From Bispira polyomma (lineage: Eukaryota): a DNA stretch of 64,000 bases. Positions 15,950-19,354 of this stretch are shown here, piece by piece (the first letter of the stretch is position 1; every line of letters begins with the position of its first letter). The stretch lies in contig OZ287750.1 of assembly GCA_965649765.1 (NCBI GenBank), forward strand, positions 2,852,001 through 2,916,000, read 5' to 3'. A program made the translations under genes and the position numbers. The notes under the pieces were generated by a model. That model saw nothing but the letters and a program-made list of their open reading frames with translations, was not told where the DNA came from and searched no databases.

Positions 15950-18900
15950 CCGCCCAAAGTTCCTGCCAGCCGGATTCCACCTCCCATTTTTCCACCTCCC
16001 AGCCGGATTCCACCTCCCTTTTGTACTGAATACAATCACCTATTACTGTCCATCACCACTATATATTTTTACTGTTGTTATTCTTGTATCTCACTGCTCC
16101 CCTTACAATATGTTTGTCATTAGGGCGGCCGTCATGTACCTGTCCCTCCTTCTGTTTTACTACCGCAACAACTCCACACTGTCTAATTCATTGGCAATGC
16201 AATACCACCTGGAAGAAAACAATTTGTCCTGCCATCCAGTCCCACATTTCTGGTCTCTTCATACACACAGTTACTCCCGGTCTAAATTTTGCCCAATCAA
16301 TTACCCACAAAAGGCTAGTTCATTCAAACTTATTACAATCCTACTGGCAGGTGATATCGCTAGCAACCCTGGCCCAATCCAGTTCGGATTTGGAAATGCC
16401 CGCTCATTGCGGAATAAAGGCCCTGTCATAGCCGATTTGATCGACTCATCCTCCATAGATATTTTCGGCATCACAGAAACACACATTAGGAGTTCTGATA
16501 CTCCATCATTCCTCTCTGAACTTACCCCAGCTGACTTTCAGCTATTCTATACCCCTCGTGTAGGTAAACAGGGTGGGGGGGGGGGTGGGATTTTTTATTA
16601 AGAAAAACTATGAATGTCGATTAGTTGCTACACCAAGTTTTACATCTTTTGAACTCATCCTTGTCTCTGCTCACTGAAAAAACCACTGTTTAAATTTTGC
16701 AACAGTTTATCGGCCTCCTGGCTCAAATCAAGACATTTTTCGAAGAATTCATGTCTTTTATTGGGTTTACTTGCTCGTTACCCTCTCCTACTGTATTCTG
16801 TGGGGATTTTAATATTCACATAGACACCGCATCTGGAAATAGTAATCGGTTTTCTACAGTTTTGGAATCTTGCAATCTTACCCAACACATAAACTTCCCT
16901 ACCCATATTCATGGGCATACACTAGACTGCTTGCTAACTCCGACTGATTTCAATAGTATCAGAAACATAAAAAACATTGGTTGCATCAGTGATCATTTTT
17001 CGATATCCTGTGAAATTGATGCTCCCTCCCCACCATCTTTTGATGTCACACAAATCACTTTTCGGCAATTTCAAAAAATCAATATGTCTGACCTTAGACA
17101 AGAGTTGGCAGATACGGCCTTCGTCAAGTCTCCTGCTGATAATGCCACTGACCTATACACACAGTACTGCGCTGACCTGCAGTCTCTTATAGAACGCCAT
17201 GCACCATGTAAATCAAAGCCATTGAAGAAGCCGGCACCTGAGTGGATCACCAGTAATTATCGTGAAATGAAGATGCTGTGTAGACAAGCCGAACGAACAT
17301 GGCGCCGAAACAAAACTACTACAAATAGATCTAGACTACGCCAATGAATCACCCGGTGCAACAACACTATAAATGACTCAAAACGTGCCTACTATGCCAA
17401 CATGATATCACAAAGCGAGGGTGACCCGAAGAAACTTTGGCAAAAACTAAATAGCACCCTCCACCGTAAAAAACAGACTATAGTACCCAAAAATTCCAAT
17501 AGCAAATCACTGGCAAACATTTTTAGTACTTTTTCACTGATAAAATTACCAGAATCCGTGACGGTTTTACATTAGCTGCCCCAAATGCCCCTTTACCAAC
17601 AGCTCCACCAACCGTCTTCAACTGTTTCTCCACAGTAACTGTTGATGAAGTCAGGAAAATTATACTGGCATCACCCGTAAAATCTTGCTTGCTAGATCCA
17701 TGGCCCACATTCCTTGTCAAAGAATGTATTGACATTTTATTGCCCTCAATCACAAAACTTATCAACCTCTCGTTGATAAATGGCGTCTTTCCAGATGATT
17801 TTAAAAAGGCTATTGTCACTCCTTTAATAAAAAAAAACCTTCTCTTCCAAAGGCTGACTTGAAAAATTACCGTCCTGTCTCAGGCCTTTGCTATATCTCT
17901 AAGTTGGTAGAACGTGCGGTTGCCTTACAGATCAAACAACATGTTGACGTCAGCAATCTGTCCAATAAGTATCAGTCAGCATACAAAAGTGGTCATTCTA
18001 CTGAGACTGCACTTCTCTGCATCAAAAACGATGTTCTTACATCTTTATCCAAAGGTATGCCTACTGCCTTAGTACTGCTGGATCTGTCAGCAGCCTTTGA
18101 TACTATTGATCACAAAGTTCTTCTTGAGTGCCTATCGTCTTGGTTCGGTATCAGCGGTATGGCGCTTAAGTGGTTCATGGCATATTTGTCTGATAGATTC
18201 CAATCAGTCAAAATTGGCAATATCTTATCCGACCCAACATGGTTAAAATTTGGTGTTCCCCAAGGTTCCGTCCTGGGTTCCATTTTGTTTTCCATGTACA
18301 CCACTCCACTCAGCAAGATTATTGCTGCATACAAACATAAACTTTCACTTCTATGCTGATGATACCCAACTGTACATCCACCTTACACCTGACTCTGCCC
18401 AGGCAGCTTTCACTTCCTTACAGAACTGCCTTGTTGGTGTGCAGCACTGGATGGCAGCAAATAAACTCAAGCTGAACCCTGAGAAGACTGAGTTTATTTT
18501 GTTTGGCTCCAAGTCGCAACGGAAAAGATTGTCCAGCTGTTTTCCACTTGACATTCTTGGCAGCAGGTTTTTTCCAGCTGACAAAGTACGAAACCTGGGT
18601 GTGGTGTTCGACTCTGAGTTGTCCTTCTCTGGCCATGTCGCATCGGTGTGTAGGTCGTGTTTTGTTGACCTCCGTGATTTCAGGCGGATTCGACACTATC
18701 TTTCCGAGTCCACTGCGGTCGCTGTTGCCGATGCTTTGGTCGGCGGCGGGCTTGATTGCTGCAGCTCTCTGCTCCGTTCCTTATCTCGTAGTGATCACGG
18801 GCGCCTTCGGAGCATCCGGCGCTCGTTGGCACGTATTGTGGCCGGGACTTCTGGATTTTCCCACATTGCTCCTGTGCTCGAGTCAATGCGCCGGCTCCCG

Positions 18901-19354
18901 GTGGGGTGTCGTGTTGCTTTCGAGACAGCAACAATGGTATATAGGTTTCTAAATTCTGGGTTGCCCACTTGTTTTGGCCCCCGTCTGTCCAGGTATGCAT
19001 GCTCAGTCAGGACAAGGCGCAGTAACCCTGATAAATTATACCTTAACATTCCCACTTTCGACCCTCGCATCCACAAATCCAAAGTTCAGTTCAATCACTG
19101 CCTAGCTCATGATGGCCCCCTCATTTGGAACAGCCTACCTGATCATGTTCGCCTGGCTCAAACTTTCTCCTCTTTCAGGAGTAAGCTGAAGGCCTATCTT
19201 TTCCACCTTAGCCGTCGCAACCATTTACTGTAGTCTCCCTGGTTACGACTTCCATCTATTTTTGATTTTCGATTAACGTTTTGGGTTTGTTGTGCCTTAG
19301 AATTTGTTGTACAAAGATTAAGCGCTATAAAAGTACAACTAGATTAGATTAGAT
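15950..19354 (+). mobile_element. L2/CR1-clade (APE-type) non-LTR retrotransposon, near-complete ORF2, inactivated
   Basis: APE endonuclease motifs (NARSL, ITETH, GGG, CGDFNIH, THIHGHTLD, SDHF), RT motifs (NYRPVS, HSTETAL, LLDLSAAFDTIDH, GVPQGSVLG, YADDTQLY, NKLKLNPEKTE) and 3' end 'aagcgctataaaag..(AGATT)n'; the 5' boundary is approximate. Confidence 0.95.
16110..19233 (+). pseudogene. LINE ORF2 (endonuclease-reverse transcriptase), disrupted
   Basis: ORF pieces 16110-16601, 16697-17347, 17859-18359 and 18250-19233 are joined by frameshifts (poly-G ~16571-16590, poly-A ~17830, ~18335) and stops (~16676, TGA 17345). Confidence 0.9.

Follow-up and report, generated by a model that had tools for sequence, protein, structure and literature searches.

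The window analysed here, a stretch of 64,000 nucleotides (G000:C3:2852001-2916000) in a genome of 1.035 Gb with related sequence present in marine metagenomes, carries a near full-length LINE whose parts are listed in Table 1. Its 5' edge was placed at 16017-16046 from the ends of public contigs. The element has an APE endonuclease and a reverse transcriptase (RT) in one open reading frame, 5' truncations among its copies and a short tandem-repeat tail with no poly(A), all features of the CR1/L2 group; its placement in the L2 clade is putative and based on motifs. The reading frame is broken by a stop codon at 17345 and by frameshifts near 16595, after 17529, at 17829-30 and after 18332, so this copy is dead. 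The YADD motif of the RT (18352-18363) is unedited in this copy. Compared with its sisters the copy lacks 13 nt after 19197, near the end of the reading frame, and 7 nt after 19255 in the 3' UTR, whose short hairpin is no more stable than shuffled sequences. Motifs like the 2A-like one upstream of the endonuclease are already known from APE-type LINEs (PMC3708506).

The family is young and abundant, as indicated by 6,655 genome matches to one 29-nt site in the 3' part of the reading frame and by sister copies lying only ~1% from the family majority. Outside the region described below, the window copy is diverged by the same ~1%. Elsewhere the window holds fragments of LINEs from this group that are older and decayed, four in number and all on the minus strand (47517-48006, 37383-37716, 35306-35596 and 33598-33975; 26-48% amino-acid identity to the reading frame of the window copy), an inverted repeat pair (4312-4918 and 5877-6473; 600 nt, 87% identical, ~960 nt apart) and, by self-comparison, tandem repeat arrays at 8739-10702, 15311-15650, 25619-26353, 30366-30960 and 57458-58388.

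Table 1. Parts of the LINE copy in the window (window positions), and A_deamin loci of the host genome
Feature	Position	Strand	Remark
Young CR1/L2-group LINE, near full-length, now dead	16017..19354	+	From comparison with family copies
2A-like (StopGo-like) motif, 5' of endonuclease	16341..16376	+	Non-canonical: Ala at the consensus Glu position
APE-type endonuclease, C-terminal part, and linker	16709..17344	+	Pfam Exo_endo_phos_2 E=1.3e-5, under the curated cut-off, the search being confined to a fragment; zero A>G edits
Reverse transcriptase domain	17862..18606	+	Pfam RVT_1 E=9e-18 and 2e-6; split by a 2-nt deletion after 18332
Sparse upstream edits	18437..18527	+	A>G at 18437, 18441, 18444 and 18527, from sister-copy comparison
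Dense A>G patch over RT thumb and C-terminal part of the reading frame	18618..18997	+	G at 55/97 family adenines
3' UTR: short hairpin and (TAGAT)n tail	19250..19354	+	0/448 A edited across 15 copies
A_deamin locus	G000:C11:6962642-6988177		HAE and PCG kept; two dsRNA-binding domains upstream
A_deamin locus	C7:48936931-48943829		HAE and PCG kept
A_deamin locus	C5:51767414-51779960		HAE and PCG kept
A_deamin locus	C8:16323672-16356194		Two dsRNA-binding domains upstream; HAE/PCG absent from the pieces read; possibly ADAD-like
A_deamin locus	C4:37660508-37664290		HAE and PCG both absent from the pieces read

We compared the window copy with 29 close sister copies, taking as the family state the majority of real copies in each column. 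Over ~2.5 kb the window copy has 59 private A>G changes but only 4 T>C, 9-10 G>A and 7 C>T. All 59 A>G changes fall in 18437-18997, with zero in the remaining ~2 kb compared. The sister background of 0.45% per A predicts 0.43 A>G changes in the dense patch instead of the observed 55 (binomial p ~1e-102). The sequence-only reading had been drawn to the same place by its poverty in A, and its count for 18601-18920 (32 A in 320 nt, one AA) is exact; on both strands these are the most A-poor 320 nt of the window, the runner-up having 55 A. It had placed the patch at 18600-18990, which is correct in location with an end set slightly short, and it had rightly suspected weaker editing from near 18430, where four sparse A>G outliers are found. 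About 25 residue changes had been ascribed to A>G with a W>R change as the exception. The kind of change is right and the number is too low, as A>G alone makes 34 codons non-synonymous and 11 synonymous; the exception is a T>C at 18892. The relatives within the window that had served as unedited comparators turn out to be old, distant elements with 35-48% amino-acid identity and no blastn match. Two tests that could have overturned the editing reading did not do so. The family itself does not carry the G's, since 27-29 of the 29 sister copies read A at the edited sites, and we rejected family-borne G on this ground. The mismatches are neither symmetric nor unclustered, A>G exceeding T>C by the above counts within a bounded cluster.

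A scan for other copies with A>G clusters had been suggested, and a genome-wide search in this LINE family found at least 14 of them, with 16 to 208 A>G changes each. The search used edited patches as genome queries, hence the set is biased to the queried regions, and an edited tail was not among the queries. The resulting 15 edited copies lie on 8 contigs (C1, C2, C3, C4, C6, C7, C12 and C14), and over their pooled 22.8 kb we counted 941 A>G, 34 T>C, 19 A>T and 9 A>C. Nine are oriented on the plus strand and six on the minus strand, so the change tracks the sense strand of the element. Clusters of sense-strand G>A as left by APOBEC were not found in these copies, which have 50 G>A in the 22.8 kb, similar to the unedited sisters (136 in 57.8 kb).

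The 3' flanks of the edited copies differ, i.e. they are separate insertions, and their edit patterns overlap only in part. The window copy and copy L031, for example, have 33 edits in common, 22 found only in the former and 10 only in the latter, and share no variant other than A>G. Judged by variants other than A>G, the copies derive from several source sub-lineages, in which L032 goes with L035, the window copy with L036, and L031 with L043. A single edited master as the ancestor of all edited copies is rejected by the differing patterns and these sub-lineages. Across copies the edits cover the equivalent of 17282-19245 of the window, indicating that the window patch is not a special site, and the longest edited patches span ~1.4 kb of the coding region. 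In five independent copies (L033, L034, L036, L038 and L055) editing ends within ~15 nt, at the equivalent of 19034-19048; possible reasons are a favoured cluster rich in A, protection of the 3' region, or an antisense partner common to these copies that stops there. One edited copy (L043, G000:C3:2752002-2753862) with 86 A>G changes in a different pattern lies ~116 kb from the window copy on the same contig, a closeness that is probably due to chance.

Heavily edited copies are rare. Probes of 29-30 nt carrying A>G changes gave 5 matches genome-wide at one site (at least 6 of 9 changes) and 5 at a second site (at least 4 of 7), while T>C control probes (at least 5 of 8 and at least 4 of 7) gave 0 and 0. 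Nine of the ten A>G matches were copies already found by the earlier queries, suggesting that heavily edited copies are few. For this LINE family in this genome they make up ~0.1% of copies at any one site and overall at least 0.2% (at least 15 of ~6,650).

The pooled spectrum and strand also bear on gene conversion, either GC-biased or from a diverged G-rich donor copy. Such conversion would account for a patch that is bounded and richer in G+C. It would not leave T>C unraised, as seen both in the window copy and in the pool; moreover, we found no donor with the same haplotype (the best other match is 88%), and the pattern is different in each copy. The strand asymmetry refutes gene conversion, barring a donor identical over the patch, and we assign it next to no probability.

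The edited adenines have a clear neighbour preference when the copies are pooled. Counting adenines that have other edits nearby, a fraction of 0.44 is edited after a 5' T (257/580), 0.37 after A (335/910), 0.27 after C (229/837) and 0.25 after G (92/361), with p=1e-12, and a 3' G is favoured at 0.43 (170/395) against 0.31-0.35 for the other 3' neighbours (p=1e-4). Permutation within copy and local density, done for the first 10 copies, gives 62 edited adenines after G where 80.7 are expected and 115 before G where 96.2 are expected. The editing of 25% of adenines after a 5' G is a milder depletion than that in hyper-edited RNA reads. The pooled order (5' T>A>C>G with 3' G favoured) matches the ADAR motif, in which an upstream G is depleted and a downstream G enriched (PMC4365171, PMC8586724), with a moderate depletion of 5' G. 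The depletion of 5' G expected by the sequence-only reading thus appears in the pooled copies and not in the window patch alone, where the family neighbours show no significant 5' bias (G 4/10, C 18/32, T 13/24, A 20/31; p=0.32). That reading had argued from the adenines surviving in 18601-18920, and its counts by 5' neighbour (G 14, C 12, T 5, A 1) are accurate. The argument built on them is confounded because many of the preceding G's are themselves edited A's, and we rejected this count as evidence for ADAR.

The RT of the element could also have misread template A, owing to a skewed nucleotide pool, to some modified adenosine that is not inosine or to an error mode like that of diversity-generating retroelements (DGRs), and this would explain changes that are confined to the element, follow its sense strand and date from insertion. 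We consider it very improbable. The changes are almost exclusively A>G, by the pooled counts above, while DGR RTs give A>N, and misreading would have to come and go in patches, reach 30-90% per A within them, and show ADAR-like neighbour preferences. Besides, C opposite A is not a wobble pair that a pool imbalance would favour.

The G's are old genomic DNA. Where editing created a CpG, it has since decayed to TG in 14 of 226 cases (6.2%), as native CpG has done in 30 of 607 (4.9%; p=0.49), against 21 of 1595 (1.3%; p=3e-5) for the corresponding change at unedited CA. Such decay is what native CpG undergoes and rules out a sequencing or polishing error as the source of the G's. Assuming that the decay is driven by methylation, the edits should be about as old as the insertions. 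The window copy alone is too small a sample to inform on this (0 of 18 edit-created CpG decayed). An assembly, polishing or sequencing artefact finds its support in public Logan contigs: in three runs of this organism they agree with both flanks without a mismatch and reach into both ends of the element, and none covers 18820-18980. The same contigs also lack the ordinary private variants of the window copy at 17219, 18029 and 18037, which is what one expects if the simplification of a very high-copy repeat removes its rare paths. In addition, the changes at 15 loci follow the strand of the element and not that of the contig, and CpG decay at edited sites could not arise from sequencing error, so that an artefact is hardly credible.

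The changes are also confined to the element. In four copies truncated at the 5' end, the first edit lies 5 nt (L031), 8 nt (L035), 7 nt (L055) and 21 nt (L038) inside the truncation point, while the next 100 nt of flanking sequence still contain 26-40 A. Edits that reach the junction next to an A-rich flank indicate that the target was the element itself and not the site where it sits. Of the eight truncated copies, these four have their 5' truncation point within an edited patch; RT stalling, or cleavage at an inosine-rich duplex, is possible behind such truncations. At the other end, the last ~105 nt are unedited in all 15 copies, compared with 375 of 1581 A edited in 18700-19099. Among copies found with queries that never included an edited tail, this fits the need for an intact or protein-covered 3' end.

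Sense-only clustered A>G could likewise come from an adenine deaminase acting on single-stranded sense DNA, either on the second strand during insertion or on the strand displaced by an R-loop afterwards, and this would need no dsRNA partner, of which we found none within the element. The context order, with 5' A above C and a preferred 3' G, is the one known for ADAR. A deaminase acting late at the locus is also at odds with promoter-less truncated copies that are edited up to the junction beside A-rich flanks and have new CpGs as old as the native ones. To our knowledge, no natural eukaryotic deaminase of adenine in single-stranded DNA has been described. ADAR acting on the cDNA strand of an RNA:DNA hybrid would predict sense T>C, which is absent. 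Overall, we regard a DNA deaminase as quite improbable.

The host encodes ADARs, judging from the catalytic motifs HAE and PCG and the dsRNA-binding domains at its five A_deamin loci (Table 1), which were examined exon by exon without a joined gene model. The double-stranded substrate does not seem to be the LINE transcript folded on itself. Self-BLAST and folding gave no long intramolecular duplex in an unedited sister copy, and the edited sites show no link with predicted pairing (rho 0.01). We therefore rejected an intramolecular hairpin as the ADAR substrate, and without a self-duplex the partner strand was probably antisense RNA. Inverted neighbouring copies of the family do exist. An inverted piece or an inverted neighbour within 0.3-4 kb was noted for L007, L009, L013 and L052 and at G000:C1:65814769+/65815593-, 1771417+/1773548-, 28359370/28362139 and 30707979/30712109, and these copies are candidate sources of fold-back dsRNA.

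The best explanation of our data, with a probability of about 85%, is that LINE RNA was hyper-edited by ADAR and then reverse-transcribed into germline DNA, as the sequence-only reading had proposed. The A>G spectrum, the strand, the clustering, the pooled context, the recurrence, the confinement to the element, the age of the G's and the host ADAR genes all support it; from them we infer the enzyme, the RNA stage, the dsRNA partner and the timing. Speaking against it are the missing self-duplex, the mild depletion of 5' G, the insignificant context in the window patch by itself, the Logan contigs that lack the patch and the unedited human L1 RNA bound by ADAR1 in culture (PMC5224506). In a cell of the germline or early embryo, part of the transcript of an active source element would become double-stranded, the likeliest partner being antisense RNA from a family copy that is either an inverted neighbour or distant. 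To judge from the signature, a host ADAR would deaminate more than half of the adenosines of the paired region. The RNA, with its unedited 3' tail, would then be primed at a chromosomal nick and reverse-transcribed. RT places C opposite inosine, which gives G on the sense strand of the new insertion, so an inosine-bearing template used in target-primed reverse transcription yields sense-strand A>G. Two edited copies lost a catalytic Asp of YADD through the edits themselves (CAGD in L050, YADG in L055), suggesting that their RT was translated before editing or supplied in trans from another RNA. The product would be an insertion with many missense changes and zero new stop codons. Such events would have occurred repeatedly, from several source sub-lineages, and would make up at least 0.2% of the surviving insertions.

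That ADAR is a restriction system for LINEs, as had also been suggested, is not established. Edited survivors are rare (~0.1% per site) and the counts cover surviving insertions only, so a major restriction is not shown; being rare here, editing is a mutational route and not a proven defence. More tentatively, at somewhat under even odds, we speculate that ADAR hyper-editing is a general, hitherto unscreened germline mutator of non-LTR elements in animals without APOBEC3. It would kill some insertions at birth, might help to truncate reverse transcription, and would leave A>G fossils that can be dated and that document the ADAR specificity and germline dsRNA of the past.

A route from RNA edits to inherited DNA is known for some retroviruses. 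ADAR-type A-to-G hypermutated proviruses have been described for RAV-1, avian leukosis virus, HTLV-2/STLV-3 and BLV (PMC8586724, PMC8025556), and they resemble our copies in their clustered A>G, in the passage of edited RNA into integrated DNA through reverse transcription and in their rarity among insertions. Those proviruses belong to exogenous LTR retroviruses and come from somatic cells or cell culture, whereas here an endogenous, inherited non-LTR element of a marine animal is affected; the BLV edits lie in a ~70-bp window of 3 proviruses, and the LINE patches extend over far longer stretches of coding region. For LINEs the route is undescribed in the open literature that we searched, where we found no report of inherited ADAR-edited copies; subscription papers lay largely outside this search, and a precedent there is possible.

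ADAR hyper-editing of repeat dsRNA, e.g. inverted Alus (PMC4365171), shares the spectrum, the clustering and the neighbour preference. Those edits are found in RNA only, while the LINE edits stand in genomic DNA and have aged there. ADAR1 restricts human LINE-1 independently of editing, with zero edits in over 2.5 kb of L1 RNA in culture (PMC5224506); there ADAR engages LINE RNA, as it would in our case, but edits are absent there and A>G is present in DNA here. A 2016 review listed ADAR mutation of non-LTR elements and Alu as "not yet determined" (PMC4982230). Our data give direct genomic evidence on this question, namely whether ADAR mutates non-LTR retrotransposons in vivo, and suggest that RNA edits have repeatedly become inherited DNA through LINE retrotransposition. 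The edited copies are also informative about LINE biology, through their unedited 3' tail and their RT supplied before editing or in trans. DGRs are similar in an adenine-specific change tied to reverse transcription, and differ in having A>N changes, an error-prone RT and a TR/VR pair; here the change is A>G only and there is no such cassette.

Among inherited elements, our copies have their G>A counterpart in the APOBEC-edited LTR retrotransposons of vertebrates (PMC4866542, PMC2873906), which are also germline copies hypermutated by a deaminase, with strand-biased clusters relative to their sisters. Their signature is the opposite one, G>A from C-to-U editing of the cDNA, and APOBEC creates stop codons, which A>G cannot do. 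The APOBEC screen, limited to LTR elements and to G>A, had no positives among 19 invertebrates (PMC4866542). It thus filtered out by design the class of A>G LINE copies described here, and a screen for A>G in LINEs can be run on any animal assembly.
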